A stretch of 64,000 bases of DNA, taken from Bispira polyomma (Eukaryota). Position 1 is the first letter of the stretch. The number at the start of each line of letters is the position of its first letter. The position numbers and the translations under genes were made by a program. The stretch lies in the NCBI GenBank assembly GCA_965649765.1, contig OZ287749.1, positions 89,652,001 through 89,716,000 on the forward strand, given 5' to 3'. This document shows positions 4,528-42,959 of the stretch, one piece after another. The notes under the pieces were generated by a model. The model was not told the DNA's origin, ran no database searches, and saw only the letters and a list, made by a program, of their open reading frames with translations.

Positions 4528-6410
4528 TGTATAGGTGGGTGTGTTTACTAAGATTTTAGGTGACCAAGTTGTTCTCTTATATATAGGTGGGCGTGTTTAC
4601 TGAGATGTTGGGTGACCAAGTTGTTCTCTATATATAGGTGGGCGTGTTTACTGAGATGTTGGGTGACCCACTTGTTCTCCATATATAGGTGGTGTGTTTA
4701 CTGAGATGTTGGGTGACCTAGTTCTCTATATATAGGTGGGCGTGTTTACTGAGATGTTGGGTGATCAAGTTGTTCTATATATATAGGTGAGTGTGTTTAC
4801 TGAGTTGTTGGGTGACCTACTTGCTTTCGATATATAGGTGAGTGTGTTTACTGAGATGTTGGGTGACCTAGTTCTCTATATATAGGTGGGCGTGTTTACT
4901 GAGATGTTGGGTGATCAAGTTGTTCTATATATATAGGTGAGTGTGTTTACTGAGTTGTTGGGTGACCTACTTGCTTTCGATATATAGGTGAGTGTGTTTA
5001 CTAAGATGTTGAGCGACCTACTTGTTTTCTATATATAGGTGGGTGTGTTTACTGAGATGTTGGGTGACCTACTTGTTTTCTATATATAGGTGGGCGTGTT
5101 TACGGAGATGTTGGGTGACCTACTTGTTCTCTATATGTAGATGGGTGTGTTTACTGAGATGTTGGGTGACCTACTTGTTTTCTATATATAGATGGGTGTG
5201 TTTACTGAGATGTTGGGTGACGTACTTGTTTTCTATATATAGGTGGGTGTGTTTACTGAGATGTTGGGTGACCTACTTGTTCTATATATATAGGATGGTG
5301 TGTTTACTGAGATGTTGGGTGACCTAGTTGTTCTCTATATATAGGTGGGCGTGTTTACTGAGATGTTGGGTGATCAAGTTGTTCTATATATATAGGTGAG
5401 TGTGTTTACTAAGATGTTTGGTGACCTACTTGTTTTCTATATGTAGGTGGGTGTGTTTACTGAGATGTTGGGCGACCAAGTTGTTCTCTATTTATAGGTG
5501 GGTGTGTTTACTGAGATGTTGGGTGACCCGCTTGTTCTATATATAGGCGGGTGTGTTTACTGAGATGTTGGGTGACCTACTTGTTTTCTATATGTATAGG
5601 TGGGTGTGTTTACTAAGATGTTGAGCGACCTACTTGTTTTCTATAAATAGGTGGGTTTGTTTACTGAGTTGTTCGATGACCCACTTGTTCTATATATATA
5701 GGTGGGCGTGTTTATTGAGATAATGGGTGACCTACTTGTTCTGTACATATAGGTGGGTGTGTTTACTGAGTTGTTCGATGACCCACTTGTTCTATATATA
5801 AAGGTTGGTGTGTTTACTGAGTTGTTGGGTGACCTACTTGCTTTCGATATATAGGTGAGTGTGTTTACTAAGATGTTGAGCGACCTACTTGTTTTCTATA
5901 TATAGGTGGGTGTGTTTACTGAGATGTTGGGTGACCAAATTGCTCTCTATATACAAGTGGATGTGTTTACTGAGATGTTGGGTGACCAAGTTGTTCTCTA
6001 TATACAAGTGGGCGTGTTTATTGAGATGTTGGGTGACCTACTTGTTCTGTACATATAGGTGGGTGTCTTTACTGAGTTGTTCGATGACCCACTTGTTCTT
6101 TTTTATAGGTGGGCATGTTTATTGAGATAATGGGTGACATACCTGTTCTGTACATATAGGTGGGTGTGTTTACTGAGTTGTTCGATGACCCACTTGTTCT
6201 ATATATATATAGGTGGACGTGTTTATTGAGATGTTGGGTGACCTACTTGTTCTGTATATATAGGTGGGTGTGTTTACTGAGATGTTGGATGACCTAGATG
6301 TTCTCTATATATACGTAGGTGTGTTTACTGAGATGTTGGGTGACCTACTTGTTCTCTATATAGAGGTGGGTGTGTTTACTGAGATGTTGGGTTACCTACT
6401 TGTTATTGTG
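4528..6410. repeat. 51-bp minisatellite, ~37 copies
   Basis: Unit ATAGGTGGGTGTGTTTACTGAGATGTTGGGTGACCTACTTGTTCTCTATAT; explains the 17-aa-repeat ORFs. Confidence 0.97.
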
Positions 6411-20973: not shown

Positions 20974-21139
20974 CTATGGAATGTTGCACCCAAGTCTGTC
21001 TATTATTGTAGCGCTAAATTCTTCAGTCGTGTTTGTGTCCATGGCAAAAAGGTTAGGATCTACTTCCAGGTCACCACTTCCTGAACCTTCAAACAGCTCA
21101 TTTTCGCGTTTGCTGCTGTATGGCACCACCTTAAGAAAT
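20974..21139 (-). CDS. CILP: Coding exon 12 (terminal): end of VWA-like domain, stop TAG
   Basis: TGACAG acceptor; phase-2 join gives (E)FLKVVPYSSKRENELFEGSGSGDLEVDPNLFAMDTNTTEEFSATIIDRLGCNIP*. Confidence 0.78.
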
Positions 21140-24100
21140 CTGTCAAGTACAGTAAAAATTTGGTAAATGTGAATGTATATGTAAATGTATGTGTAGGTTT
21201 ATAGTCTGATATAACCTTTGTATAAGGCACCTTGTCCGCGAATATAATTTTCAGGCCTGCAGCGAGGATCGAACAGGGGCTCTGAGATCTCCCAGATCCA
21301 AAGTCTGACACTCCAACCGCTAGGCCCCGCCCGCCCCCCCTTCCCCCATTAATTCCCTCCCTGTACACGCCCACATCCATCTCTACCGATCTTGGCTATG
21401 TTTTTGAGGTGGGACTTTCCCTTTTGGTTGATTGATTCCAGTGTTGCACTTTAAAAGATGCATCAGCATCAATAAGGCATATTAAAAAAGCAAAATACAA
21501 TACAAATACAAGAAAAGTATCACAGTCAAGTGGCAAATATAAACCCCGAAATCATATACATCATATATATACATATATCAAGTATGTTACTTACTCTACT
21601 GATTTATCAAGCTCTGTGCTGTTAAATTGCGATACATAGAAGTCATAGTCAAATGCAATTAGCAAAACTTTCACCCCGTCCCTAGTCTCCTCCAGCACAG
21701 TGTTGATTGTATCATTGCTCTGACTGAGGTTAATACTGCCATTAACAGCCTCGTCCTCAGTGAAATCCTTCATAGCATTATCCAGCATTTCGTTGGAGCT
21801 GGTGTACTGTGACGTCAGATTCCACAAGAGGTTGACCTCACTATTTAGTAGGGTCAATGACACACGCACATTTTCTGGGCCGATGGGCATCTGCTCCACA
21901 ATTGTGAGTATCCAATCTAGACTATTTTCTTCTTGACTGTTAACTTGGGGATTCAGGATGATAATAACTTCCCCAAAACAATCAATGTTTGCTGAAAACA
22001 GATAGACATAAAATGTTGCATATACTTAACATGGCAATAAATAGAGAGCAATAATTTTTTTGCTTGGTTTGAGACTTTGAAATACTTTGTAATTGTTATT
22101 ATGTGTGTTTCATCTTTATGTTCATAAAATATATTTGAAACAAACTAAGAGAGTTATTTGATATATCTATATAATATTAAATAGATATACATGGAAAAGT
22201 AAACACATAAAGAACTCTTGAACCATAATACAACGATGATAACTACAGCACAACTATAACAATTTTACACAGCCTTTTAAAGATAAGGTTTACTTGTAAA
22301 GTGCAACTCACTTCCAAATTGCACAGCAAACTCTTCATCATCAGCCTCAATGCAGCTACTGAAGGCAGCAATATCAGACTCTGTTGGTGTAGATCCAGAT
22401 CTTGTTTCGCAGAAGATGCCTCCAATCGACCCGGCTCCACTTATATCGAAGGCAAAGACAGAGTCAAACCGCTCCACCGAGAATGTGTCATTCAGGTCAG
22501 AGTTGACTACACTGGCATTTAGGCGAACTCCATTATCCTTATACCAAGCGATAATGGAAACACGGGTGTAGCTGTCTTCCAGGTTATGCTGGGTATCCGT
22601 GGAGCAGCCTCTTGTTCCCGGAGGTTTTACCTTTGAACATACCACCCCACCTACGGTGCAGTTTTCATGGAATCCATACACATCCAGGGGCTCGATCTCC
22701 TGCAAACTGCTGTTGTACTGAAGCGTGCCCACCTGACTCAGCGCCTGGACCTTCACATCGTTGGTGTACTGGGCAATCTTGACTCGAACATAGCAAGTGG
22801 TGTACTGCTGGGCTCTGATTTCTGGAGCACTGTACCATGACTTGTAGTACTGAGGTTTGCAGGTGTCAGTCAAGGTGTCTCTGAACTGGATCCCCTGGAA
22901 CTCGTAACACTGGTCCTCCTTGTGCAAGTGAAAGCGGAAGTGACGATGGGAGATTGGTGCATCCGTGCAAGTCGGAGAGTATGGCCACTTCCCCTCCCAG
23001 TCATAAAATGGACCCATGGCATCTGGCACTGCGGAAAGGTCATAGTTCACCTGGATTTTATCTTCTAGGGCTTCATACTCAAGGGTATCTACTAAGTAGT
23101 CGAGCCCGGTGTGATTTACTGCAGGCACTAAGTACTTGCCATCCTTTTCTGCCACTAAGAATCCATTAAAATCAAATCGAACGTTGCCGTTACGAGGGCT
23201 GTCACAGCGGTGGATGATGCAATATCCCTCCAAGTCGTTATTGTTGTAGGCAATTCTTGTTGAATAGGAATATGTATGGTCATTCCCGGCGATAAAAGCA
23301 TATAACTTGACTCCTCTGATCTGGTCTCTCTCCAAGAAATCTTCGTTCTCATAAATCCTGACCTTAGAAAGGCAGGTGGTGGTTGAAACGGCATCAAAGT
23401 TGAACCAGGGGGAAGAAGATGATATACCCGCAATATTTACACTATAATATGAGGACTGCCTCTTTTTCCGTTCTGAAGTTATGGCTTTAACTGAGGCTAA
23501 TTCTTCCCACATGCCAGAGAAAGGGTTGAAGACGTATAATTTGATAGCAGAGAGAGGGTTCGTTGCCCCGGGACTGTCCGTCTCATCCACATCCCCAAGT
23601 ACTGCGGCAGGTATATTTAGCTGAACTTCGTTCACTATTTGAAGCGGGGTAGTACCGTCAGCAGCATAAAATGACAGCTGCATCATACCTGGTAAGATGT
23701 GGGAACAGAATATCACAATGTATTCATAAGCAAGTATTTCTATTATCACTGACAGTTGTATTGTACCATTGTATTGTATGATGTATTTTTAACGCGCCTT
23801 GTTGATGCAAAGCATCTACTAAAGCATAACAACAGAATCAGTTAACCGATAGAGAAGTCCAAAAACTTAGCCAAGGTCGTAAGGAAGGATGTGGGGGTGT
23901 ACAGGATACTCTTACACTGGAACTAAACCACCATGTGATGAAAGCCAATTATACTTCAAATGGGGTATGCCAATGGTATGCTTAACTAGTAATATATTTT
24001 GCAAAAACACTCTATAATTGTTTTAAATGTGTTTCAGGTCAAATAACACAGAGGGTGCAGGAAGCATATCCTCAGGCTCATGCACTGGGTCAATTGAGGA

Positions 24101-27100
24101 TAATGTGGAATTTATTCAGTCTCACAATTGCTACCATTTATGACCATTCATTTTGAACTATTACAAAACCTTTACATGCAGATCTGTAGAGAGACGAGTT
24201 CAAACATGCTCACCAACTTCATAAATATGAAGGCCTCAGGTTTGACTGGAGAATCGAGTATTTTTCCAGAATATGGATGCTAACACTGAAATCTAATTTT
24301 AATTCCATGTCTTATTTATTTAGACCGTAAGAAAAACATTAGAACACTGGGTACTAAAGTGCTCAAAATACACTCCAATTGGTTGATACCATCGGTAAAG
24401 GTAAGAACCTTTCGCCAAGGAAAGCTTTAAAAACTCTAGAATAATTAAAACAGTCATATCGTGACCTTGGTATTGCTACGTCACACGAGTTCAAATCAAA
24501 ATTAAAACCTCATTTTTTAAAAACAAATCTCAGGCCGAAGCCTTTTTGTTGTGTCATAACATGGGTTCTAATCCAGCATATATGAAAGCATTATGTATAC
24601 TATTTCCCTTTAAAAAACATATATATTATGTTTAATGATTTATCTTTTATATATAATTTCGTACATAATTCAATGTTCATTATGTAATATATAAAATCTG
24701 GGTATTTTTGAAAATTACCATAGCATGTTGAGCTTTATTGAAAATGTAACTCATACAAAAAAATTCCTTATTTATCTGGTGGTTGACAAAATCAGTGTGG
24801 ACACTTCCCCCTAAAATCCTAGTTCTGCACTATAAAGTTTCAGTGTTTCTTGCCTTTTGTCACATAATGTTCCACAACATGTGGTATCTGTGATCTGTGT
24901 AATGCAAAAAGCCACTTTGTGTGAATGTTGATATGTGGCACATATTACATATATCATAGGATTTCACTGGTTATAGTAGAGAGGATTTTTGTATCTTTCT
25001 TTGTACTCTTAATCTTTAATGAGTCATATAACTCTAGCATAACAGTCCCATATGAGAACAGGAGACTGAAAAGAAAGGGAGTCTGCACTGATATTGTGGT
25101 ATTGATTAATTTTTGTATGTGCTTTGTGTCACGTTTGAGAAAGGTGTACATGAAAAAACTTCATATTCCTGTTTCAATTCTACACAGTGTTAATACTTGC
25201 TGCTGATAAATTGTTAAAATAAAATTTTTAATTAAAAAAAAAATAAACTTCTTTGTTAATAACTTCCTTCTTCATTAGTTGCACTCACTCACCATCAAAT
25301 AAAAACCCTAATAAAAAATAGACTTTGAAGACTTTATAACATAATAGTGCTTTAATAGAGTTTTTCTTTCATAATGTAGTCTATCTGCGATCGTTTTGCG
25401 TGTTTTCTTTACTAAACCCTTAAGAAAACCACTACAGAGATCCAAATTTATGACATCATTGCCCATGTCTGCTGTGAATTCTGAAAAATGGTGGCCCCAT
25501 AGTCGCTTTAATTAATACAAAAAAATTATTGGATTTTGTTTTCATATTCTTGCATTTTTGTCAAATTTTGAAGATGCCTGTAAACTATTAAAGTAGTAAA
25601 TTACCATAATTATGATGGAAAATATACACATTTAGATCAATTGCAACAAAAATTGAACATTGTTTGTGAAATAAATGGGCGTGCTTCACCCATAATGTAT
25701 CACACACACAGTGACCCCTTAACGGTAAAAAAAGTTGATTGTAATCGCCTCTATCTACTTACCATAGGTCCTCAGTTGTTCCTCCTCTCCATCCGAACCA
25801 GATGTGGTGAAATCCCCTGGAGCAGACTCCAGCTGTTTTACGTCTTTTGGATCAATGATAGACACATAAGGGGTGACCAATCCCTTAAAAAAGAAGGTAC
25901 AGATATTATAAACTAACAACAATATCCTTTACCAGTTAGAATTTAAATTTGAATTTAGTTGGGTTTTTATGTGGCTTTTAACAGTTCAGGTCACAATGGC
26001 CAGCTCTAAACCAGTGGAAAAAACCGGTGCTGAATCCATGGTAAACCACTGACTAAATTTCTCACAGGAAGAAATAAACGGTATTGAAACCCACATTGGT
26101 GAAAGGCCAGTGATTAATTGCAAGCGCTAAACACTAGGTCATTGCGGCTCCTTTATTTCTAGTTATTTTGTTTTTAAATTTACATAACATTGTACTTCAC
26201 ATGTGCTAATGCAAAAATTATTTGTGTGTCAATTTAAATTTCTCTTACATGTGAATTAACTGAATGACTTACTATATAAAACAAGGGACAAAAACACATT
26301 TCTCTATAATTACACTGAAAGTCTTTTGTTAAAAGGTGCATTATAAAGCACTTTTAAAGTATTATAGGTACCCATTAGACAATAATTTATCCTTCTGTTT
26401 GCATTTTAAGCTCAGAGCTTCACTAAGTCTAAGCCAGTTTAAATTATATCAGTACTAAGTGATAAATTTTATTAAGCTTTTTGTAATGCCACTATTTAGA
26501 CGAGTGGTACACCACATTAAAGAAACACCACAATCAGTTAGATACTTTACTGAGTGCTGTATAATAACACTATCATCATATATTACTAATTAATTTACAC
26601 TGTATGTAAAAGCGTAAGCGACAGGAAAAACTCCATGCATCACCAAAAGTAGAAGGATTTTTACCTCATACAGGTTACCGGCTTCATCATAGAATGAATC
26701 GGCAGGGACAGCAACATCCACGAGCTTATCATCAGCTTGAGTCTTTATGTTTAAAGTTTGAGCCACTGTGCTGTTTATAACAGGTAGAACCGTTACAGAA
26801 GGAAGTTTGATGCTGACATAGAAGACTCCATCTGCGTCCTCTTCCAAATGCAGCACGGCTGTAGTGTCCGCATAGTCAACATGACTCAGAGGCTTGGCCG
26901 TAATGGCTACAGTCCTAACACCTTCTGGTACGGTGAAGTAAAATTGACCATTGATGGCTGTGCTGGTGACCAATGTTTTGTTATAATAGATCTCCACATC
27001 TTTTAGAGGGGTGTTGTCGGGGCTCCCAAAAACAAACCCCTGGATGTCTATTACTGGATTTGTGCACTCTGAACAGCCACATGCCACGGCCTTTTGGATA

Positions 27101-30100
27101 GTGTAGTTGAAGCCATCGCAAGGGAGGCTTTCTGTCAGGAATATTGTCGCAGCACAGCAAAACATCTGACCGTCCCCACAGCTTTGATTGTTGACACTGT
27201 TGCCACGACAACGGATGCTGTCACACTGACCTACATCGACGACTGTTTTTCCATCGACACTACATCCATTAGGAAGTCTTTGAAACTTACTCTCTGGGCT
27301 GTCAGGGCAAAAGTCGTCTGGATTTTCTACAGGATATAGGTACATTTATATAAATAAAATGCTCTGTATGTAATAAAGATGCAAAATTGTGCATATATCT
27401 CAAAAATATGTTCAAGGTATCAAAACCAGCCTAATATCATTTCTAATGTCAGAACTTCATAAAGTTAGTTTTAATAATCAATGTAATTAATCATATGTCT
27501 ACCAGTTTTAATAGAGACATTTTGCAATGAAGTGATTTTATCTTTTGGCTATTCATATGGTAGCACTCATTTCCCAGAGCAGAGTTTCATTCTAATTATT
27601 CAATATAAAAAGACACAATACTACTGGGGAACTAATTAAACTAGTAAAATGTTGACCCTTTATTCCTGCTCCAATTCAACCAGAACAATATTATCAGAAA
27701 ATGCATGATTTAAAATAAACAATTTGGGTCCAGGCCAAAGGCGAACTGTTGATTATTTTAACATGTCGCCATGACATTGCATGCCCTGTACCTTTAACTG
27801 TGAGTGTAGCATCATTCGAGAAAATGCCCTGGCTGTCGGTGTTGGCACGGCAACGGTAGATACCAGCACTGTCCAGGGTTACTGAGGTCAGGGACAATGT
27901 ACTTCCACTGTCTCTGGTTATCAGAACATTGTTTTTGAACCTGTTAAGTTATCAATAATTTCAATTGAAGAGAAATATAATATCTATATTTTTAACTGCA
28001 ATATATTTTCATTTATTTGGATCACTGTCCACATTTACTGTTATTATTATCATCAAACTGCTAAGTGGTTATTTTTTATTATAAGGTGCTAAGGCTAGTG
28101 TTGAAAAAAATACCACTCCCATTAATTCCTTCATGTGATAAAGTACTTGCCATAGTCCATTGGTGTACAAGGCTTCAGCATTCGTTTCCTCCACCATTTA
28201 ATCTGGCCACGATTGATATTTGTTGATAGCGATGTAAAACCCAACAAAATTTAAAAGGATATTAAATTTTGACTGAGTTTGTGTGTATAATTGTAACTGA
28301 CAAAGCTTTTTTTTTTGTAACTTTGTCAAATATGATTTGAAAGTATTAGAACAATGACTGGTCTAAAAGTGTTTTTGTTCAGAGGGAGGCTAAAATGTAT
28401 TTGTTCAAATAAGTTAAACATTGGGTTCTTAATTGTGTAGTGATTACACACTCTGCAGTTGTGGGTTCAAATCTCGGCCCCTTATGAATTTGGAAAAGTT
28501 GGTAGTACACTTGATGAAGATGGATGGTGTAGACTATATGTATTAATCCAGTTTGATATTAGACCCAAACTGAACTAAATTTAAATTTTAGTTAAATGTC
28601 CCCAAAACCGGTCAATCTTTCTTCTGAATATGATGGGTATGCGTATATGTATTTATCCAGAGCAATGTTAGACCCAAACTGAACTAAATCTTAGCTGAAC
28701 CTCAACAGAATCAATCTTTGTTGTGATTGTGATGTTTTGATTGTAGGTATGCTTCCATTGCTGTATTAAGTGCTTTATAAGTCTGGAATACAAAGTACAA
28801 GACATGGACATCTACTTCTGACTTTAACTGCACCTTGACTCTATATAATTTACTGCATGTGTACCACATAAGACATCAGTATGACTAGGGAGTTGATACA
28901 CACCATTACTTTTTTATGATGACCCCTAATGCTACATTAAGCCAGGTCAACTTTTTGTTGAGTTTAAATTCATCCTATCACTTACCATTCGTAGTATTTT
29001 GGTAAAGGGTTGCCAATGGCAGCACAGCAAAACAACACATCATCCCCAACTATCCTTTTCTTACTGCTGGGGTGTAGGTCCATTGTCAGCAATTCTGTAA
29101 TATTATTTAGTTATATATTTCTTTTATTTCATAATAGTTACATGTATAATTTGCAATATTATAATACAAAGCAAACTGCAAGAAATGCCCATTTGGCATA
29201 TATGTCACATCATATTTTTAGCGTTTTAGGTATAACAAGCATAACAAGGTACATTTTAAAGTCATAGCCCATTCAAAATTAGAGATGATAGTTTTTACTC
29301 GTGATTTCAATGACCTTATTATACATATATACACACAACAAACGAGTATGATGATAAAATGATTATCTGATACATCTATTCATTGAGATATCTATTCCAA
29401 TGCTATCCATCAACAGATTATGTTTGGAAGACATTTATTACAAAAGACAAACCTGTGTGGTTGATTAACCTCCTATATTTTTGTGTAATGTCAATAAATA
29501 TGTTGAAACTGAACAAAGTGTGCTCTCCAAGGACCTTTCGTAACATAAGTAAATACAAACAAATTATGTGGACAGTACAAAAATATGGAATGATACTTCT
29601 GTGGAAAGTTCATCAAAATCTTGACATTCCCCCAAAAATGTTCTAGAACACATTACACAGTTGTTATATTCTATTACAAAGACCGGAAGTACGCTGTGCA
29701 CGAAAATCCAGACAGTGAGCAAGTTCTACCTGTCGATTATCTTGGAGAATGAAGGACAGCCAGATGGCAGAACAAAAACTAGAAAACAAATTACTTCGAG
29801 AATATGTAATCAAATGTAAGGAAATACTATTAAAGATGGTCTTTATAATAGAAATAGAGTTCTCATGATTGTACTGAACCCTGCGTTTGGTTGGGATTTT
29901 ACGTCAACAGCTTAGGTCATATAGCGACAGCCAAAATTAGTGGTGGAGGTAATCAGTGCTAAAGCACTATAAACCACACGTAGGAACTAACAGGATAACG
30001 TTTCCATACACTGGGTGACCACAGCCTCAAATTATTCAACTGGAAGTACTGTTGATCATTTGACAAAACTGTGCAATAACTATTACCAAACTGGTACCCA

Positions 30101-30597
30101 CCTGTTCCTTCTAGCTGGATTACATTTGGCAACCAGTCTGCAGTGTATGTCTGACCTATATAACCAGCCTTCTGAAAGGTAAGTTCGTGGCTGACACAAA
30201 GATTTTCTAAAGAGTAATTCCCGCTTGGTCCCGTGGTGAATAGGATGTGGTAGGGTGTGTCGCTGTTGGCAATCTCTACTCCGCCTAATGCCACACCAGT
30301 GGTGGATTGGACTGCTCCCTCAAACTTCCCATGACATTCACAGTGGGTACAAGAAGCACTCAAGACCCCAGAGGTACAGACTGTTGTACAATCTATGATG
30401 GTTACAAAGAGAAAGAAAAGAGAAAGTAAATTATTATAGTGTCACCTGTAATTACAGTGTTATTTACATAAAATGAAAACATTAAAAAAGGACAGCCAGA
30501 CCAGTAGTTGGGCTCATGAGACACTCTATATATATCAGTTTGACACATAACTGAGTTAACATATATTTACAAACATATATGAAACCTCATTTTAACA

Positions 30598-30637
<40 letters not shown>

Positions 30638-32053
30638 TATATCATGTGCATATCACTAATATATAGTTATCATTACTAATATACTAGCTAACCCTATTTT
30701 TAATTGCAAATGTTTAGTTTCTATGTTTAGTTTCTATGTTTAGTTACATATGTATGGGGTGCATTATGATTTCAATACACTATGTGCTCATATATATATT
30801 TATATATATGTCCTGGTACAAAATCCAGCATTTTAGTACAAAGAGACGAAAAACACAACACAAATACAGAAGATACTCCAATTGGACTCATTACGAACTT
30901 AAACTTTTGAAATATTTTCAAATCCTGCCAAAAAAGAAAGATTGGTACCAATTTGGGAGAAACTTCATTTACAATGATATGTATAGACCAAATTAACATA
31001 TTTTTATTTTTAAAATGATAATTAATAAATGTGAACTTTACATTGTATATTCCAGTTAATATATCATTAAAAAAGAAAAAAACAATTTTAATGATTTTTT
31101 TTTTTAATTATTTCATTGTAATAATATACTATATGGACACCAATTTTATAGCCTAGCCATCGTTTTAATAGTTTTAGAAAGTTTTAGAAGGTTACCCAGG
31201 TCATTTCTTCGAATCTTTTATGTCATGTGTTTAATCTATAGAATTCCGTAAACTTAATGAAGGTTTAAATAAAGCTAGATATTTCAACAACTTTTTAGCA
31301 TCAATCTTTAGTATTTTTTTTTTCATTGGTACGGTTTGACACATTTGTCGAGATTTCATTTTATTTCGTACATACCAAGTTAATTTTTTTATCAGGCTCA
31401 AGGCAATTTTTTATCAGGCATTGTTTTCATTATAAAATTTGGACAGTCACCTTGAAAAAAAGGGTACCGCCATGTTGGAAATAATGTGTAAGGCCAACAT
31501 AGATGGGTTGGAAGTAGGCAAACCCAGTGGCCAAACTCAGGGGTGTCAGATGAATATTTCTCATACTATGCGCCTGTATGTTTTTTCAAAGACAACTCTT
31601 ATTTTTTTTTGTGTGCTAATAAACATTCAGCTTAAGACTTTTAATCAGTGTTTTTCCACTTCTGTTAACAGTAACAATTAAAAATATATAATTTGATGGT
31701 CTAAATTGTATATATATATATATATATTTATGTATAATTTCTAATTAGGGTTAAACATATGCACATGCTCTTTAGTAACCTTTCTCCTTGGCTGAATAAA
31801 GTCTACCATCTGCCCCCCCCCCCCCCCCCCTTCATCCTCTGAATAAATGGCCCATAAATTATTTCACACTGAACTTTACTTTCAAATGTGTATTTCTGTA
31901 ATATAAGTCTGTTTCTGCGTGTGTGTGTGTTTTTTGAGGGGAGGGTCGAATTGGTACCAGAACATTTACTTTTCTATGGTGAATATATAATTGAGTAATC
32001 CATCATTGCGACACTTAAAAGAAGTATTTTTATGTCTGTGTTACCCCCCCCCC

Positions 32054-32086
<33 letters not shown>

Positions 32087-35000
32087 ACCCCGTAAAAGTG
32101 GCAACATATATGAACATTTGAGAGAGAAAAACAAGTAGTATTTTACACCGAAGAACAAAAAACATGTACAAAGGGAAATGTTTTTGTAATTGTACAGGGT
32201 CTTACTTGTTAAATAGATAGATATAATAAACCAAAAGGGTATGTGCAGGATATAGTCATGATCACGACAGTCTCACTGAATTTATGACTTCACTGAATAT
32301 AGTTGGCTTTTTGTTTGGGGTTTTTCCTTCCTTGTACATTTTATTGTTGAATTATTGATGCTGCTGTTTACTTATGAGATACAACCTTTAAATTTTCATG
32401 TAAAGTTGAATCTCTATTATATAAACACGCTGGGAGAAAATATAACGTTAATATACAGTTAAAACTAAAAACAAGAATTGTCTCTTCAAAAAAGACACAG
32501 GCGCGCAGTGTAAAAAAATAACTACCGTTGATATGGGCACTATATATACTGTATATATATACTGGCTGAACCTTATAGCAATCTGACATCTCTCAGTTTA
32601 GATGGGTCTTACATATGATTTTTATAATGGCAGTGGCCCTTCTTAGACTGAAAACTACATCAGGCTGAACCTAATAATAAAATCTTTCTCTTAAGACTGG
32701 CCACCACCTCAGCATTTGATCTCGCCCTGAGAGACGCTCTCACTGATTACAGTATTTGTTACATTCACATTTTGGTGAATGTTATATGATTGTGTTGGAC
32801 GCGTATATAAGGTTTCCGAATTCACAAAAACAACAAACCGTTGCTATAATGTATGTTGTCTATTTCATGAAATATTTAAGTTTCTGTTTTATTTCTGCAC
32901 ATTGTCTTTTTTTAACACAGACTGCACTTGTCACAACTGTTGTCATTCATTCTCGGATTTTGTGTAAAATTCATGTCACAACTTTCACAGTTATTGTCTC
33001 TCCACCTCTCCTACCTACATACTTATCCTTGGCAAAGAAAGGAAAGAGTCTTTTAGTTTTCTCTGTGAAACCTACCGAAACGGCTGCATTTTGAGCCCAT
33101 TTGTTATCGAATAGTCTACCAGTTGAGCTTAGATTACTACAAACACTGTCTTGGTTTAGAAGAAACCCCTGTAGCCTACATCCCGACATCCTCCCTTATT
33201 AACCGGCTATGCTTTTTGTAGTTCTCGATTGGTTCATTTCTTTATCCTACAATTGACTTTATATTAATGCATTTCATCATAATTCTCATAAAAACGAATT
33301 ATATACTTTCTATTTTGCACAACACACACTAAAACGTCAGATATTTACAACTTCTCTATTTGTCAAGAGCTTGGGCCATATCGGCGACCAGAAAGACTAA
33401 ATTCATAAAAATTATAGCTAGCTATTGTTTTTTTTTGTTTTTTTTTTTTTTCTTATAAACAACCAAATTACCCTAAAAACTATTTCAACAAATTGTTTTG
33501 TTTTTTTTTACTTAATTGTGCTTTAAAACCCCATAAAAACTATTTCTCGTTTTCAAAAGCTAATCCGAGCTTCGGCGAAGATCGTAGCAGCACTACTATT
33601 TATAGATCTTTACCTGTACAGATCCAGGTGTAGCGATCGATACCAGGTGTAAGTCCTTACGAGATTTGCGTCATTTTTGGGAGCTCTCGTGCGGTGTTTT
33701 CACCAATTCTAAGCTCCGAGTTTTAGTACTCGCCGACTGCTGAAGCATGTAAACAAACGAACGGGAATAAGCGAAATGGCACGAGAGGGATGGTGTGGTG
33801 AATCGGGGCCAATGAGATTTAGTGGGTGTTTCTGGGTGTGGTAGCCTCATGGCTTCCAGACTGGATCTCTCTCTCTTTCATATTGGGAACAAAGGGTTGT
33901 GGATGGTTTTTTTTTTGTGTGGATTGGAATTTAACATTTTTAATCAAGGTAGGGTTCATACTCATTATGTTTTAACAAGTAGTAACAACATATTTGGTGG
34001 GGATAGGGGGGTTTGGGATGAGTTTCATTATATTTAAATATCATTATACCCAATATTTTTGACCAAATAGTTATCAAGCATGGGGATAAAGTTTGACCTG
34101 GTTTTTGGGAGTTGCTGGTTAGTCTTGATAGGGCCCATATCTTTGTAAACAGTTTCTCCCCTATTTATTTCCATTACTGTAATTTTATAATATCATTCAC
34201 CTCATTCATTTAGTGATACTTGGAGTATACCTTAATACTTTGGTACTCCATCCCTTTTGGTGGGGGTAGGGGTACCCCTCATGGGTAGGTGGTCACATTT
34301 CATCAAATTATCAGCAGTTTTAACCACCATTCTGTTGGGCTACAACAGCCAGGGAATAAGTATATCTAGTCCCAAGGAGGCAGGTGAGGAGCTGGCCAGA
34401 TTCTTGGGGGGACTAACTGGGTTACCCCGTATTTGTTATCCACGACGGCGATGAGGCCATGTATGGTGAATGTACCTATTCAAATGTTGACATTCCAATC
34501 ATCTGGGTCATCTTTCATGTTGGTAGATGGGTTGAACTTTGACCTGACCTTGATCTTTAACCTTGTTTCACCCCTTTGTTTCCCAATCCCGGTATTTGTT
34601 GACCGTACCCATGATGTGGTGGGAAGTTCCAGGAGTTCTGTCTATATATAGACCATCCCAGGACTTCGCCACATGGTACAGGGAAGCAACTATGGGAGGA
34701 CAAATATGATTGAGCACCCCATTAATTAGGTTAGGAAAGGTTTAAGTAAAACGGTAGGTAGGATCGAGTTAGTACATGCAATATGGGAGTTAAAGGGATT
34801 TCTGGTACAGTGGAATTTTTGTTAGAACTTGTATTATAGTATAGAGTCATTTAATTAGGCTTAAAAGAAAGTAAACTTTATAATTGTAGTGGGATTTTTG
34901 GTAGAACTAGAGTTATAATATAGAGACATTTATTTAAACTTAAAAAAACTAAACTCAATAATTGTGTTTAAATGGTAAAATAATAATTCTAAGTTGAAAG

Positions 35001-38000
35001 TAATGTTTCCAGCAGTAATAAATTATAATCACTGTGAAATTTGACCTGAGTAACAAATAATAATATTGTTTCTTTAACCTTCAAATAGTTGTTGATGTAA
35101 ATGCCTAATATTATTGTTTTCTTTAACTTGCAAATAATTGTCGATACAAACGTCCAATATTATTGTTTTCTTTAACTTTACAATTTTTGTTGCTTAGAAA
35201 TAAGTATTCTATATCACCACTTGCTGTGTATATATCCCCCTTTTTGTTCAAATTATGTGATGTAACATTATAATACATCACATAATTTAACTTTATTATT
35301 AAATTCTATACTTTTCTAAATTAAAAAAATATATCAAATCCTAACTTAATTATTTTTAATAACATTATGAAATATCACACTTTACTAAATTTTAAATAAA
35401 TCAAATCCTTAAGAAATTATCTTGAGTTTGAGTACATTATTAAATCCTATATTTTCCAAATTGTAAATAAAATCTTAATTTTGTCATATGTCATATCCTC
35501 AGTAAATGTTCTGTGTTTCCTTGGTTAATTTGTGTTTGTTGTGTCTATTTCTTTCTTTCAATGTCATGTGTGGGTATTAACTTCTATATATTGTTCTAAT
35601 TCTAAAATATAAAACCTAACTGTTTATAATCTCCTTTCTTTTAATATTAATACTAAGTCAGCCAATAATTGGTGTTTGCTATTCTATACATATATGTGTG
35701 GCTTTCCATTTTAATATTGCACCCCACATCTCTTTTGTCCGTTTTAATATTTACATTTGTTGTTGATATATACTTGTTTGAAATGTCATTTATTGTGTTT
35801 CCATTATTGTGTTTTCCACTCTATTAAAATAACTTCGATCAACTCCTGACCTGGGTTTGCCAGTAAAATCAGTAGGATTAAGATTAGAGGATGACCTCGA
35901 CCATGACCTGAAAGGCAAATGACCTTGACCTTGGTTTACAAACCTGCACTCTTTTTGAGTTGGTTGAATTAGTTGTAAGGTAAAATTGCATAGGTGTCCT
36001 AACAAAGAAATCCTTGAACCTAGGCTGCAATATCTCACTTGCTCACGACTCCGACTATACAGTGTGCTCGGTTTACACTACTAGATTGTGAAAACTTAAG
36101 GTTGGACTATCCAGAAAGAATATTACAGTAACAGCTTTTGGTCGGTGGCTGGGTTGGACCACGGGAAATGGGGCAGAGTGAATTGGTTGGTCGGTGGGTA
36201 ATCGGCCAGTGTTGTCCCAGCTAGTGGGTGGTAGGGGAACCCAGAGTACCAAGATGAGTTCTGGTTAGGTGGGATAGTTTCAACTCTTGGTCTATGGTCT
36301 TGTCGACCTAATCGACATGGTGGCAGCAAACGGAAAGTATGAATAACTAGCGTCAGTGGGTGATAGGTTAAATCCTATATAGATAGAAGATAGACAGGCA
36401 GATACATGGTGGAGTAGAAACCATCGGAAGGGGATACGACAAAGAGGTCGGGTCCACAGTTAGCAGCACCCTTCCCGGGCTCTTCTCCTCCGGTGGTGCG
36501 CCACCCTCCCGGGAAGCAGCACTGAGCAGTGGTAGTGCGGGGTTCCGGCCAGGCATCCGGTAGAGTGTGTTGGGTCGGCACCGGCGGTCCCCTTCAGGCC
36601 GTGGCGGGGCCGTTCTCCCTCGAGGGCTCGGGGCAACAAGGGGGGGTTCGATCCCTCCCCCCCGGATGGAGAAGAGCGGACGGCGGACGGGGTAGCGCCC
36701 CGTCCCGCTACACAGGGCTCACAATAATCTGTCTTTTTATAGATCTTTACCTGGACAGATCTAGGGCTCACAGTCCTGTATCAATTTGTCCTTACCTGGA
36801 TATATCCAGGGATCACAGTCCTCTGTCTATTTATAGATCATTACCTTGAGAGATCCAGGGCTTACAGCCTTGTATATATTTGTCCTTACCTGAACTGATC
36901 CAGGGCTCAAAGTCCTGTATATATTTGTCCTTACCTTCACAGATCTAGGTTTCTCAATCCTCTGTCTATTTATAGATCTTTACCTAGAGAGATCCAGGGC
37001 TCACAGTCCTGTATATATTTGTCCTTACCTTCACAGATCCAGAGCTCTCAATCCTCTGTCTATTTATAGATTTTGACCTGGAGAGATCCAAGGCTCACAA
37101 TCCTGTATCTATTTGTCCTTACCTGGACATATCCAGAGCTTACAATCCTCTGTCTATTTTTAAATCTTTACCTGGACAGATCCAGGGCTCACAGTTTCGT
37201 ATATGTTTGTCCTTACCTGGATATATCCAGGGCTCACAGTCCTGTGTCTATTTATAGATCATTACCAGGACAGATCCAGGCTTTAAAGTCCTATATCTAT
37301 TTGTCCTTACCTGGACACGTCTAGGCATCATAGTCCTGTGTCTATTTATAAATCCTTACCTGGACAGGGCCAGGGCTCGCACTCCTGATTCTCTACTTCG
37401 TCCCCCACACATTCCAGATCTAGGTCTCCTTTGTCACACGTCCTACTCCGGGTTTGTGCCCCGCCCCCACAGCTCACTGTGCAGTCATTCCAATCCGACC
37501 ACGGCTGCCATGTACCGGCTGTCACTGCAGAAGTTAGATACATAATATGTGTAATCTGTTTAACAAATATATCTGGATGTAGAGGAACTTAGTGGTGAAG
37601 TGGTAAGGCACTCGTCTCTAACTTCTGCAATCATGGGCTTGAATTTCAGTGATTGCATAGATTTGGTGATAAGAATTAACAGGTTAGATGCTCTAAAGGA
37701 GTATGTATTGTTTTTCTCATGGTGCACGAAATATAGTTGCACAGATCAGTTGTGACAGCTTTTGCTATTTATATTGAGTTCATAGTAGCTTTCAACAACT
37801 ATATGCACTCATATTACAGGTAGCTTATGGAAGGTGAAAGTAAAACATGCTCGTTGGTCAAGATTTCTGTTTTAAAAACCACCGCCCAGCAGCATGTCAA
37901 CCGTCAACTTTGCTAGATACATGCCGGAATAAAGATTCAAACTCACAACTGCAGAGGTGAAAGGCAAGAACATTACCTCTACAGCCCCAAGGTCGCCAGA

Positions 38001-41000
38001 CCGAGGGAACAAGAGTGATTTAGAATTTACTGCACATGGCATGGCCATGTCTTACCGGGGCATATAAATACATTAAATTCTATGATATTATTGTTATTTA
38101 ATGTAAGAGAATATAGTGAATGCACGAATTGAGTTGAATAAGGTTCAAGTATAGAATACTCTTCATTGTACAAGTTCAGCCTTTCAACTCAAAGAGAAAG
38201 ATATCGCCGCTAAAAAGTCATATTACAAGTAAGTGAGGGAAAAATAGTTCATATTTTTGGGGGTTGTCAACTGCTTCATAGGTTCTGGGAGTAATACCGT
38301 CAACTATTTGCCAACAACATATCGATCGAAAGTGCTAAAGTTTAAAGTTTGGTTTACATTTTGTACATGTAGACTATAAAACTTATTATACATTTTTATA
38401 CAGGGTTGCTAAAATGGCAGATACCCCCTCCTTTAATACCCAGGTCTCATTTACATGGAAGGCAATTACGATCGCACCCAGAACACACCATTTCCTATTG
38501 TGAGGAACTGAAGGAAAATAAAATACCATTTTGGGGTGTCAACTACTCGTCAACAGACACTGGTTCTGGGAGTAACAAATGTCGTTGAATGCTAGTCAAC
38601 AAGTTGGGGATCGCAAGGGTTAAGGAGGGCTGTATCTACCATTTTAGTATCCTTGTATAGACAATATGTTTAAAGTAATACTCCTACCAGTAACTGGACA
38701 GGCCTTATGTGTAGGAGAATAGTCGAGAATCAGGTGAATCGGCTCGACTATTAATTTAAAGAAACACCTGATTCGAGGCAATTCTCTGACTTAAACCGCT
38801 GAAAACTAAGGTGACAGTAACAAATTGTATTTTTAAGTATTGTTTAAAGTCATTTCGAATTTCTAAATACATATACACCCATAATAAATATAAATAAAAG
38901 TAAGGCGATACAATTTTATGTTAATATAATTTTATATCATAATTCTAATGAATAAATGTAATATATATTTAAAAGTTACTGAATATGATGTATCAATGTA
39001 AACTTGAACTGAGTAATTTATTGAGCAAGGTCCTTCAATAATGTGGCCCAGAAAGCAGACAGGACATTCTTTAAAACGAAACATCTGTTTTAAACAATAG
39101 GTATCAACCAAACAGGAGTTTAAATATTTAAAGAATATACCCACCAGTAACTGTACAGGCCTGCGTGTTACATCTCTGACTTGAAGTGGCTGAACCCACA
39201 CAATAAGACCCATTACAGTCACGTGACCTCCTCTGTATCCCTCCGCCACAAGCCAGATCACAAGCCCCAAAGTCTCCCCAATCTGACCAAGTGCCGAGTA
39301 CATCTGGAGTTTACGGAACACAAAATTAATCATCTAAATTCTTCTTGTTGGGATTTCAATAAAGCTTTGCACAGGGTTTTTTCCAAAGCTAAAGAGGATA
39401 TAATTTTTACATTGTTTATACTATAGTACAAAAACAAATCTTAATTGATGAAACATGAAAGTTCAACTGATGAACCAGGAGACACAAATGTGGGGATATG
39501 CATCATTGAACAAATGTGTTTTGAATCTGCAGTAGGAGGAAAGCCATAAAGTAGAAGCTGTCCTGTTGAAATGAGGTAATCAATGACATGTAATAAATCG
39601 TGGTAAACTTCTATGATAATGTAGGATAACTGTGATACAAGATCACAAAAATACAACAGATGCTATAAATAAACATAGCCAAATCCTAATAGACAATGAC
39701 CAAATTCTATAAATATGCTCATATTCTAATATGGAAATTGTACTGGCCAAATTCTATAAACATAGCCAAATGCTATAAGACAAATTCTATAAACATAGCC
39801 AAATGCTAAAAGACAAATTCTATAAACATAGCCAAATGCTATAAGACAAATTCTATAAACATAGCCAAATGCTATAAGACAAATTCTAAAAAACATAGCT
39901 AAATGCGATTAACATCAATAAAGAAAGCTAAATTCTATACAGATGGCCAAACAAAGCCAAATTCTAATAGTCAAATTTTAAAAACATAGCCACAATCTAT
40001 CAACATTCGTAAACAGAGCCAAATTCTATATATATATATATCGCTAAATTCTGTAAACTTAGCCATATTGTAATGACCAAATTGTAATAGATAAATTCTA
40101 AAATCTTAGCTAAATTCTATAAGCATAGTCACTAACCTTCCTGTGTAGTAGTAGGTTCGTCAGTACTAATCACAATTTCTGGTGTAGTTGGATCAACCGG
40201 TGTGGTTGGATCAACTGGTGTGGTTGGATCAACTGGTGTGGTTGTTTCATCAACAGTTGTTTCAACACCATTAGTCTCAGTTGCCTCCACAATTGAAGTA
40301 GTTACCATGGTAGGAGTGGTGGATGGTGGTTCGGCTGTCCCCGGTTGTTCTGCTGTGGGTGTAGTGGTTGTTTCAGGTTGCAAAGTGGCTGTTGTCGTCG
40401 CTGCCAAGGTTGTTCGAATAGTTGTTGTGGTTGTTGTTGAAGTTATTGTAGGGACAGTAGTGGGTGCAACTGTAGTGGCAGTGTCTATGGTGGCAAATAA
40501 TACATATGTTACATTGAATATGTGCAGTCAGAGTAAAGCTGAACAGTTATACTTGGATCTGAAATTAATCAATTCATTAAAACAATCCATGAACCTTTTA
40601 ATGTGTATATTGTAACATTAATTTTATGTAAAAATTACCTTTATCCCTTCCACATAAATGAGATGTGTGAAACTGAACAGTTATACTTGTATCTGATATT
40701 AATCAATTTCATTAGAAGAATCCATGTACCATTTTAGTGTTACATTAATTTTATGTGAAAATTATTTTATCCTGTATACATATTCACTGAATTTGGTTTA
40801 TTGAGTTAATGTGTAAAAGAACTACCTGACAATATCAGGGAATGTGTATTCACTGAAATTTTGCAGAAAATATGCATAACCTGTACACACACACACATAT
40901 ATATAATTGGAACATCAATAAGAATTAATAAAATTTGGAACATTAATAAAATAACGGCTTTTAGCAATTTTGAAAACAAATACAATACACAAACAAAAAA

Positions 41001-42043
41001 CATTACACAATTAAAAAATGAACAAGTGCTAAAGCCATTGTAAACCACAAAATAGACCGAATAATCTGTCCCTATTTAGCGAGATTCCTTGCTGTTATTT
41101 TGCCGACAGACTCACGAAAGGGACAGAATGGCTTCCATAAGCAAAACATTGTAAATCAAAATGGGCATATATAGAGATAGAATCTGATAAAAATAAATAC
41201 ATCTCCTCATTCCTTATATATGATATAGTAGCTGATTTTGTGTTATATCATGCCAATATGGTACATGAAATTAATATAAAATAAAAACCAAACCACATAC
41301 ACCGGTTTAACACTGTTGGCCATGTTACACCAGGTGAAACTTACAACGTTTTGCTTATGGAAGCCGTTCTGTCCCTTTTCTGGAGCCCGTCGGCAAAATA
41401 ACATCAAGGAATCTCGCTAAATAGAGACAGATTATTCAGTCTAACCACCAACCTACGGCAAGTTACTCTCCCGCATGACGGACAGAACAGCTTTCGAACC
41501 CACATTGGTTCCAAGAGACCAGTGCTTGTAAAACTAACGTTTATAACCATTAGGCCTCCTTTTACACTGTAGATGATGTAAATTTGCAATTGTACCAACA
41601 TACTATTCATTATTTATATGAAATGTATTTTTACTTTAAATGTTATAATAATTTTAAAATACATGTTCATGTATTCTAGTAGTGAATAAAAGTGTTATTC
41701 GAATATACATGATTCTAATTTATTATACTAATAGCCATACTTCACTAACTAAAGAGAACTAAAAAAAACTAATCACAAGGGTTATCAAATGGTCTGTCCT
41801 TTTACCTGCCCTGGTTGAGAAATACACAGACAGTCCAATAGTAATCCCTGTCAAGGCCACTACAGTTACCACAGCAACCACTAATACCATAGGACTGACG
41901 GCTGCCGCACTTGGGGCTGCTTTGGTTGCAGCGTAGAAATTGTTCGTAGGCCGGGGTTTGTTAAACGAAGAAGGCCGGAACTTCTGTGAATATGGTGTTC
42001 CGCCCTGGTAATACTGGGGCGCACTTCGGTAGAGATCTGCCAT
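20974..42043 (-). CDS. CILP: CILP-family gene (12 coding exons, ~1393 aa): predicted type II membrane protein TM-mucin-TSP1x2-CarboxypepD_reg-like-Ig-CILP core-furin site-VWA-like
   Basis: Exons 41806-42043, 40137-40484, 39145-39303, 37360-37524, 30102-30392, 28986-29094, 27792-27940, 26665-27326, 25763-25883, 22312-23688, 21595-21991, 20974-21139 join in frame via GT-AG introns (sum 4182 nt). CILP-like motifs: HPSSKKRIVGDDVLFCCAAIGNPLPKYYEW, FCPDSPE..RLP, IDPKD..SAPGDF...LRTYGM, SGMWEE, RKKR, WFNFD, CLSKVRIY, GPFY. Confidence 0.85.
21253..21333 (-). pseudogene. tRNA-like sequence (TTG/Gln-like anticodon loop), probably SINE head or tRNA pseudogene, in last intron
   Basis: A-box GGCCTAGCGG, anticodon arm TCAGA-CTTTGGA-TCTGG, B-box GTTCGATCC; acceptor stem does not pair. 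Confidence 0.5.
21595..21991 (-). CDS. CILP: Coding exon 11: degenerate VWA-like domain (N part)
   Basis: TNIDCFGEVIIILNPQVNS...IVEQMPIGPENVRVSLTLL...WNL...TRDGVKVLLIAFD; TTCAG acceptor, GA|GTAAGT donor. Confidence 0.8.
22312..23688 (-). CDS. CILP: Coding exon 10: CILP core, furin site RKKR (23459-23470) and C-terminal region
   Basis: Most of the 490-aa ORF; ACCAG acceptor 23689-90, GAA|GTGAGT donor at 22311. Confidence 0.9.
25763..25883 (-). CDS. CILP: Coding exon 9: CILP core
   Basis: GLVTPYVSIIDPKDVKQLESAPGDFTTSGSDGEEEQLRTY(G); TTAAG acceptor, ATG|GTAAGT donor. Confidence 0.9.
25936..26150 (-). mobile_element. tRNA-derived SINE copy (intron 8)
   Basis: Same family as 15170-15400; CCGCAATGACCTAGTG head, AAATTC-repeat tail. 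Confidence 0.75.
26665..27326 (-). CDS. CILP: Coding exon 8: CILP Cys-rich region + second prealbumin-like domain
   Basis: ENPDDFCPDSPESKFQRLPNGC...FCC...CGCSEC...VPADSFYDEAGNLYE; TGTAG acceptor, GAG|GTAAAA donor. Confidence 0.9.
27792..27940 (-). CDS. CILP: Coding exon 7: Ig domain C-half
   Basis: (W)FKNNVLITRDSGSTLSLTSVTLDSAGIYRCRANTDSQGIFSNDATLTVK; AACAG acceptor, AAG|GTACAG donor. Confidence 0.9.
28986..29094 (-). CDS. CILP: Coding exon 6: Ig domain N-half
   Basis: ELLTMDLHPSSKKRIVGDDVLFCCAAIGNPLPKYYE(W); TACAG acceptor, TG|GTAAGT donor; the CC-x-A-x-G-x-P motif is typical of the CILP Ig domain. Confidence 0.9.
30102..30392 (-). CDS. CILP: Coding exon 5: Cys-rich linker + carboxypeptidase-regulatory-like (prealbumin-fold) domain
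   Basis: DCTTVCTSGVLSASCTHCECHGKFEGAVQSTTGVALGGVEI...TTGPSGNYSLENLC...FQKAGY; CATAG acceptor, CAG|GTGGGT donor. Confidence 0.87.
33629..36712. mobile_element. 3084-bp TG..CA insertion with 7-bp terminal IR and 4-bp TSD (solo-LTR-like, Gypsy-type; or Ginger-like)
   Basis: Starts TGTAGCG (33629), ends CGCTACA (36712); TSD CAGG at 33625-28 and 36713-16; removal restores a minisatellite unit. Confidence 0.85.
36713..37365. repeat. 45/49-bp alternating minisatellite derived from exon 4 3' end + splice donor
   Basis: Units CCTTACCTGGACAGATCCAGGGCTCACAGTCCTG match the exon junction CCTTACCTGGACAGGGCCAGGGCTCGCACTCCTG; one more unit at 33597-33628. Confidence 0.92.
37360..37524 (-). CDS. CILP: Coding exon 4: thrombospondin type-1 repeat 2
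   Basis: [27 protein letters not shown]...CEPWPCP; TGCAG acceptor, CCAG|GTAAGG donor. Confidence 0.92.
38401..38655. mobile_element. Tc1/mariner-type MITE, TA TSD
   Basis: TA|CAGGGTTGCTAAAATGGCAGATAC..CTCCTTTAA vs TTAAGGAG..GTATCTACCATTTTAGTATCCTTG|TA. Confidence 0.7.
39145..39303 (-). CDS. CILP: Coding exon 3: thrombospondin type-1 repeat 1 (not in correct frame in ORF track)
   Basis: Translates DVLGTWSDWGDFGACDLACGGGIQRRSRDCNGSYCVGSATSSQRCNTQACTVT; CCAG acceptor, CTG|GTGGGT donor; phase 1-1. Confidence 0.9.
39660..40130. repeat. Degenerate ~33-bp tandem repeat abutting exon 2 donor
   Basis: Unit AAATTCTATAAACATAGCCAAATGCTATAAGAC. Confidence 0.85.
40137..40484 (-). CDS. CILP: Coding exon 2: Thr/Pro/Glu-rich mucin-like stalk
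   Basis: Acceptor CATAG at 40485-86, donor GAAG|GTTAGT; DTATTVAPTTVPT...(VDPTTP)x3...DEPTTTQE; phase 1-1. Confidence 0.8.
41053..41443. mobile_element. Academ-like MITE (~100-bp TIRs, TAG..CTA termini) inserted in a SINE
   Basis: TAGACCGAATAATCTGTCCCTATTTAGCGAGATTCCTTG... / ...CAAGGAATCTCGCTAAATAGAGACAGATTATTCAGTCTA; flanks ACCACAAAA / ACCACCAAC (7/9 match). Confidence 0.8.
41806..42043 (-). CDS. CILP: Coding exon 1: Tyr-rich cytoplasmic tail + signal-anchor/TM helix
   Basis: MADLYRSAPQYYQGGTPYSQKF...VLVVAVVTVVALTGITIGLSVYFSTRA; ATG at 42043; donor CAG|GTAAAA at 41805; acceptor TTTAG at 42079-80 with an upstream in-exon stop-rich leader. Confidence 0.75.
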
Positions 42044-42055
42044 GTCAATTCAGTG

Positions 42056-42315
42056 CTAATTCTTTATTGGGCAAATACCTAAACATATACAAAGGTCATG
42101 GGTATCATTTTATTATCACTCTAATTCTTTATTGGGCAAATACCTAAACATATACAAAGGTCATGTGTATCATTTTATTATCACTCTAAGCCTTTATTAG
42201 GCAAATACCTAAACATATACAAAGGTCATGTGTATCATTTTATTATCACTCTAATTCTTTATTGGCCAAATACCTAAACATATACAAAGGTCATGGGTAT
42301 CATTTTATTATAATT
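42056..42315. repeat. 65-bp x4 tandem repeat containing the exon 1 splice acceptor
   Basis: Units start at 42056, 42121, 42186, 42251; each has minus-strand GTATATGTTTAG|GTATTTG. Confidence 0.92.
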
Positions 42316-42959
42316 CTATTATGAAGAATGTAGTGTATTCTAATTCCAAATTTAAAATCATAAAAATACAGTTTGTAACACAATTTGTACATTTCTAAGT
42401 GGAAACTTGTTGATATAAATGTATTTAATGTATTAAAATTTCTAAATCAATATCAATTAACAATGTACGTCATGTATATTTTAAGTTAACATTATATATA
42501 TTTCAATTGAAAATAATAATAAAATTGGCAAAATTGTAAACAGCCAAATTTTGTTTTTTATACATAGACCTAGCGTTACTCATTAGTCGGGGTGGTTTTG
42601 TTACTACATAAAAATGCAGCCTTAACTATAAGGACGTATCTTTAATTACTATAAGGATGAATAATTATGGTGTATCATTTATTTGAAATATGTATCTTTT
42701 ACTATAATGATGCATCATTTACTAAAAACATGTGTCCTTTATACTATAATCATATATCGTTATCTGAAAGAAGGTATACCTTACCAAATTGTGTATCCTT
42801 TATTAAAAGTGTATCATTTACTAAACTTCACTGGAAGGATTATACCATACTAAAATGGCGTATCCTTAACTATAATGATGTAACTTTTACTAAAAGGACG
42901 TAACCTTAACTACAAGAATGGATCCTTTATTTGCTACTCTGGCCTTGTCTTTGTATGAT

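Follow-up and report, generated by a model that had tools for sequence, protein, structure and literature searches.

CILP has been studied, to our knowledge, almost exclusively as a secreted matrix protein of vertebrates. FAM171A1, FAM171A2 and FAM171B are presumably membrane proteins with a CarboxypepD-like and ZU5-like module common to CILP. The FAM171 proteins have type I topology and a long cytosolic C-terminus. ZU5-like domains in both CILP and FAM171 were reportedly described by Liao et al. in 2014. In our searches the likeness of the FAM171 modules amounted to weak atlas leads and, unlike the CILP described here, the three proteins are devoid of TSP1, Ig, CILP_8th, CILP_C and VWA domains. 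A further likeness, to the GAIN/ZU5/Nup98 autoproteolytic fold of adhesion GPCRs, ankyrins and UNC5, lies in the predicted fold of the domain carrying the furin loop; in contrast to GAIN and ZU5 domains, the CILP site is one for furin placed one hairpin earlier, and there is neither autoproteolysis, an HFS or HLT motif nor an adjacent 7TM.

The gene analysed here lies in a stretch of 64,000 nucleotides (the window) from a probable annelid, matches to erythrocruorin linkers giving the lead to this group. It shares with vertebrate CILP1 and CILP2 the order TSP1, CarboxypepD_reg, Ig, CILP_5th, CILP, furin loop, CILP_8th and CILP_C, and its exon 10 is about 22-29% identical to quail CILP2. It differs from them in that the cleaved signal peptide and the WxxW domain give way to a signal anchor, a tail and a mucin stalk, in having two TSP1 repeats against one, and in an additional C-terminal VWA domain.

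Gene model and N-terminus

The gene consists of 12 exons on the minus strand, running from the ATG at 42043 to the stop at 20974 (Table 1), exactly the two ends given by the sequence-only reading. All introns are GT-AG with compatible phases, and the exons join in a single frame without internal stops that encodes 1399 amino acids; the open spliced frame of the earlier reading thus stands, its length of 1393 aa being revised. Along the protein a 52-aa tail, a 23-aa helix, a Thr-rich stalk, two TSP1 repeats, the CILP body and a VWA domain without MIDAS follow one another. Pfam scans and sequence searches were run exon by exon, the joined frame serving for the frame check and hydropathy. The scans returned TSP_1 twice, CarboxypepD_reg, Ig, CILP_5th, CILP, CILP_8th, CILP_C and VWA; CILP_5th, CILP and CILP_8th scored above the Pfam cut-off, while CILP_C (E 7e-4) fell under it yet aligned to the end. 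The two TSP1 repeats and CILP body read earlier were recovered in this way, CILP_C weakly. Four CILP domains are present in order, TSP1, CarboxypepD_reg-like and Ig domains stand ahead of the CILP body, and a furin consensus is found; as judged from these domains and the furin site the gene is a member of the CILP family, and it is not a vertebrate-type CILP, since it has neither signal peptide nor WxxW.

Table 1. Exons, domains and repeats of the CILP gene and of the surrounding window (window positions)
Feature	Position	Strand	Basis
Exon 1: start codon, 52-aa hydrophilic tail, predicted signal-anchor helix, phase-1 donor	41806..42043	-	frame; orthologue 58% identical
Predicted type II transmembrane helix, aa 53-75	41819..41887	-	KD19 2.66; 16/23 identical in orthologue
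Exon 2: Thr/Pro-rich mucin-like stalk, aa 80-195	40137..40484	-	47 Thr, 16 Pro in 117
Exon 3: TSP1 repeat 1 (WSDW)	39145..39303	-	PF00090 E 5e-7
Exon 4: TSP1 repeat 2 (WSDW, CTVSCG)	37360..37524	-	PF00090 E 7e-12
Exon 5: Cys-rich linker and CarboxypepD_reg-like sandwich	30102..30392	-	PF13620 E 3e-5; 73% to orthologue
Exon 6: Ig domain, first half	28986..29094	-	frame; 88% to orthologue
Exon 7: Ig domain, second half	27792..27940	-	PF13895 E 6e-6
Exon 8: CILP_5th, CILP (transthyretin-like sandwich), start of ZU5/GAIN-B-like domain	26665..27326	-	PF23708 E 4e-14, PF23591 E 3e-8; fold match on relative's model
Exon 9: ZU5/GAIN-B-like domain, middle	25763..25883	-	inferred from homologue model; orthologue comparison
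Exon 10: end of ZU5-like domain with furin loop, then CILP_8th, CILP_C	22294..23688	-	Pfam; exon-10 structure model
RKKR furin consensus, aa 821-824, low-confidence loop, then two strands of the same domain	23459..23470	-	sequence, alignment, predicted models
Exon 11: VWA domain, MIDAS DxSxS replaced by NPQVNS	21595..21991	-	PF00092 E 3e-5; alignment with MIDAS-intact paralogues
Exon 12: VWA end, terminal Cys, stop	20974..21139	-	52% to orthologue, same terminal CNIP-stop
Tandem array of four 65-bp copies, directly upstream of the start codon, ATG triplets in each	42056..42318		
Very high-copy dispersed repeat, intron 1	41052..41443		depth thousands x single-copy
Very high-copy dispersed repeat, intron 3	38490..39130		depth thousands x single-copy
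Minisatellite (period 94/139) built from the exon 4 end and its donor site	36747..37387		
51-bp x 37 satellite adjoining the RVT_1 fragments	4530..6404		
Broken non-LTR-type reverse transcriptase fragments (RVT_1)	1650..3430	-	

The reading of the N-terminus depends on exon 1. Three sequencing runs contain the locus and were judged to be DNA, because the introns are evenly covered and there are zero splice joints. An orthologue in a second species (ENA ERZ22147071) possesses all 12 exons in order; exon 1 differs between the two with pN 0.24 against pS 0.74, synonymous sites being saturated, and the first 40 residues of the tail share 24 identities (60%). The Thr-rich exon occupies the same position in the orthologue and in the paralogues. 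A rule demanding Met, a hydrophilic tail, a helix and a phase-1 donor, with thresholds chosen post hoc when the exons had already been seen, found exon 1 only on both strands of the window, nothing in shuffled sequence, and eight matches in a cluster of paralogues, namely seven CILP genes and one extra. A simple heuristic scan from 30400 to 64000 of the window found no signal-peptide-like exon. The joins of exons 1, 2 and 3 are strongly supported at the sequence level, because the orthologue keeps exon 1 together with 11 further exons in order and 7/7 CILP genes in 200 kb of the paralogue cluster have the anchor exon.

The hydrophilic tail carries Tyr at 5, 11, 12, 18 and 37, and the helix is the sole strongly hydrophobic segment of the protein (the next best KD19 being 1.36), so that the roughly 50 hydrophilic residues with five Tyr, the 23-aa helix and the Thr-rich stalk described before were all found again. 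An n-region of 52 aa with an h-region of 23 aa is typical of uncleaved signal anchors with the tail inside. The charge bias flanking the helix is weak (+1 vs 0), with few basic residues directly before it, and T-R-A, which directly follows the helix and precedes the stalk, agrees with the (-3,-1) rule of signal peptidase. This peptidase-like site is absent in several paralogues, whose n-regions measure 46-66 aa or more, several of them with basic residues abutting the helix and without small residues at -3/-1. In secreted CILPs from the same protein searches, hydrophobicity peaks at aa 1-4. We infer that the helix is an uncleaved type II anchor with a cytosolic N-terminus, which fits the hydropathy, the length of the n-region and the conservation. 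That the gene specifies a CILP with a type II anchor is very likely; the stalk-mounted type II protein of the earlier reading is in agreement with the conserved exon 1 of the orthologue, the anchor exons of the paralogues and the outcome of the simple scan. The WxxW domain (Mucin2_WxxW, PF13330) gave no match at or near the CILP locus, its matches being confined to contig C6, away from CILP loci, and a hidden WxxW exon was rejected on this ground.

The receptor-like signalling also proposed for the protein is not supported. Five Tyr in 52 residues represent no clear excess over background (P about 0.06), 3/5 are kept in the orthologue, and Tyr enrichment was hence discarded as a sign of signalling. 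A motif search found no YxxPhi, ITAM/ITIM, NPxY or PPxY in the tail of the gene or of its orthologue. A role of the conserved tail in sorting, or as a link to the cytoskeleton, is possible.

Furin loop, VWA domain and TSP1 repeats

The RKKR sequence aligns with the furin sites of chordate CILPs, and most CILPs have retained dibasic sites. Release at this site is not a fixed property of the family, because paralogue A has lost it by deletion, paralogue C has RRRIHQ in its place and the orthologue has a weaker SRKR without the P4 Arg. Two AlphaFold models were considered, one of exon 10 (pLDDT 86) and one of a 35%-identical relative, P0005 (pLDDT 78, pTM 0.69). Both place the furin site in a loop, after which come two strands that still belong to the preceding domain and then the next domain. 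Residues 111-322 of the P0005 model, with the furin loop (293-296) among them, align to the GAIN domain of CD97 (Z 8.9, rmsd 3.4, 146 aligned), and the model aligns as well to the GAIN domains of CELSR1 (Z 8.5) and BAI3 (Z 8.1) and to the ankyrin ZU5 (7.6-7.9). These matches of the relative's model, Z 7.6-8.9 with rmsd 3.4-4.1 over 123-149 aligned residues, are moderately above background; fold searches with the exon-10 model gave no match above Z 5.5, and all ESM Atlas feature matches were below 0.9. Neither HFS nor HL(T/S), the autoproteolysis motif, precedes the last strand in the alignment. Because the furin loop sits inside the ZU5/GAIN-B-like sandwich of the models, the N- and C-terminal halves probably remain associated once the loop is cut. 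That the C-terminal half would be released at this site, as put forward in the sequence-only reading, is made doubtful by the location of the site within a predicted domain and by its loss or degradation in paralogues.

In the VWA domain the MIDAS motif is D(T/S)SGS in two relatives and in four paralogues of the cluster, against NPQVNS in the window gene and NPSIKG in the orthologue. The domain shows 62% conservation, though MIDAS is lost in the window gene and its orthologue. Hence the VWA of the window gene would have no metal-dependent binding and would nevertheless be under selection, and the cluster paralogues with MIDAS probably bind ligands via metal. Both TSP1 repeats contain WSDW, and the W(S/G)xW motif in the TSP1 of CILP1 is said to bind TGF-beta1 (PMC12839030). 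A growth-factor trap operating through the TSP1 WSxW motifs is possible.

Paralogues and relatives in other animals

Roughly 20 CILP loci were counted in the genome of the window (1.04 Gb), at least 9 of them in a cluster about 0.65 Mb off on the same contig. Within 200 kb of the cluster, 7/7 CILP genes (five on the plus and two on the minus strand) place an exon with tail, helix and phase-1 donor ahead of a Thr-rich one; this count covers the cluster without its last two genes and without the paralogues on C4, C5, C8, C12, C14 and C3. The tails of the paralogues fall into several distinct classes, some with YxxPhi; such motifs occur in genes B, D and E. The predicted tails of the minus-strand paralogues at G000:C2:90373636 and 90460844 contain MYEEI, the classic Src SH2-binding motif. 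Some paralogues may therefore be able to signal even if the window gene does not.

Genes B, C, D and E lie at G000:C2:90383298-90501109, and the first three share 85-94% identity in exons 3, 8 and 10. Exon 1 of gene C is 21-22% like that of B and D and 77% like that of E, the body of E being just 41-54% like that of C; this mismatch of tails and bodies among genes B-E points to gene conversion or a swapping of first exons. In gene E a Thr-rich mucin exon, its second, separates CILP_C from VWA (G000:C2:90501478-90501921). At gene A, an inverted partial copy of exons 8-9 lies right upstream of the first TSP1 exon (G000:C2:90347756-90348787), and 7.6 kb upstream of the anchor exon one more exon combines tail, helix and phase-1 donor (G000:C2:90330924-90331203), possibly an alternative first exon or part of another gene. 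The expansion, the coexistence of MIDAS-live and MIDAS-dead VWA tips and the mixed pairings of tails and bodies suggest a diversified surface family.

Outside this genome, the Amphiura filiformis protein XP_072031342.1 shows a 62-aa tail, a helix, a short Ser/Thr stalk, TSP1 and the CILP body, and three others are anchored by their layout: XP_072018875.1 of the same species, XP_077866656.1 of Saccoglossus kowalevskii and XP_019647718.1 of Branchiostoma belcheri. In the Saccoglossus protein the C-terminal CILP block is duplicated in tandem, and there are two furin sites. These invertebrate RefSeq proteins, named 'CILP 1-like', share with the window gene a hydrophilic tail (32-164 aa), one strong helix, TSP1, the CILP body and the lack of WxxW, but differ in having a short stalk or HYR/EGF instead of the long one, in lacking VWA and in a body identity of 20-28%. 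Together with the window gene they form no single supported clade in a quick tree with an unresolved base, in which the row own_C4b, cut on the wrong strand, is to be disregarded. A Logan contig from run SRR24204647 of a relative holds an uninterrupted frame of 1057 codons with tail, helix, CILP and VWA, and is probably a transcript. Ordinary signal peptides are found in other amphioxus, tunicate and coral CILPs and in most of those of vertebrates. Judging from these predicted proteins, the anchored form is present in deuterostomes and, probably, in protostomes. The rarity at first assumed for a membrane-anchored CILP is not borne out, the same layout occurring in RefSeq predictions of three deuterostome phyla that are named just 'CILP-like'; it is an overlooked invertebrate variant and not a one-off, because it is also predicted in brittle stars, acorn worms and amphioxus. 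A literature search covering few subscription journals found no paper describing an invertebrate or membrane-anchored CILP of such architecture.

Proposed mechanism and alternatives

We propose that the gene encodes a type II membrane-anchored CILP glycoprotein, stalk-mounted and two-chained, acting in matrix binding or adhesion at the cell surface, and consider this mechanism as a whole reasonably probable. In the model, the helix after the tail would act as an uncleaved signal anchor leaving the tail in the cytosol, and the Thr-rich stalk, O-glycosylated, would keep the ectodomain at a distance from the membrane. The TSP1, Ig and other beta-sandwich domains would bind matrix components, glycosaminoglycans or growth factors, like vertebrate CILP. 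Furin would nick the RKKR loop in the secretory pathway, and the two strands after the cut would complete the ZU5/GAIN-B-like sandwich, so that the C-terminal half stays bound. The VWA tip would have lost metal-dependent binding in the window gene and still be selected, cluster paralogues retaining the MIDAS.

The alternatives differ from this model in the fate of the two halves, the role of the tail or the origin of the N-terminus. An anchored precursor might, once cut by furin, shed the C-terminal half with CILP_8th, CILP_C and VWA and keep the N-terminal one as a surface growth-factor trap; a canonical RKKR, the dibasic sites of most CILPs, a review describing vertebrate CILP2 as cleaved into free halves (PMC12839030) and the WSDW of both TSP1 repeats, set beside the TGF-beta1-binding motif of CILP1, all speak for such shedding, which is nonetheless unlikely given that the site lies inside a predicted domain and has been deleted in A, changed in C and weakened in the orthologue. 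Were the protein a genuine receptor that signals, the tail would relay the effect of a ligand or of force at the ectodomain, which might split the nicked GAIN-like domain. The 60% identity of the first 40 tail residues, the several tail classes of the paralogues, some with YxxPhi, and the GAIN-like fold with a cleavage loop in the relative's model agree with this, but the nicked domain is about 700 aa away from the membrane with no 7TM or channel and no HFS/HLT before its last strand, and the tails of the gene and its orthologue show no YxxPhi, NPxY or PPxY, with Tyr not clearly enriched; we regard a receptor as improbable.

Were the helix instead an unusually late signal peptide, or were the protein shed next to the membrane, the product would be a secreted mucin-CILP like the vertebrate ones. 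T-R-A and the scarcity of basic residues directly before the helix are compatible with this, whereas the anchor-like lengths of the n- and h-regions, the long and often basic-flanked n-regions of paralogues without small -3/-1 residues, and the peak of secreted CILPs at aa 1-4 make it very improbable. Scarcely credible is an origin of exons 1-2 in another transcript, or their disuse, with the CILP gene starting at an unseen signal-peptide exon: the runs bearing the locus do lack spliced reads, behaving as DNA, but the same order and phase recur in the second species and in seven paralogues, and the simple scan of 30400-64000 gave no signal-peptide-like exon.

A wider extension of the type II adhesion model, which we advance as a long shot, is that anchored CILPs constitute an old and so far unrecognised bilaterian family of type II adhesion receptors, with a furin-nicked GAIN/ZU5-like junction released by force or ligand and tandem paralogues pairing near-identical ectodomains with different tails, of which the secreted vertebrate CILPs would be a derived and restricted offshoot.

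The importance of the finding is limited because public predictions already contained the layout, though it had gone unremarked. Anchored forms in a probable annelid, an echinoderm, a hemichordate and amphioxus would nevertheless indicate that the CILP module works at the cell surface too, a setting that makes topology, cleavage and ligand binding easy to assay. Moreover, the location of the furin site within the modelled ZU5/GAIN-like domain predicts that the halves of human CILP1 and CILP2 may also stay associated.
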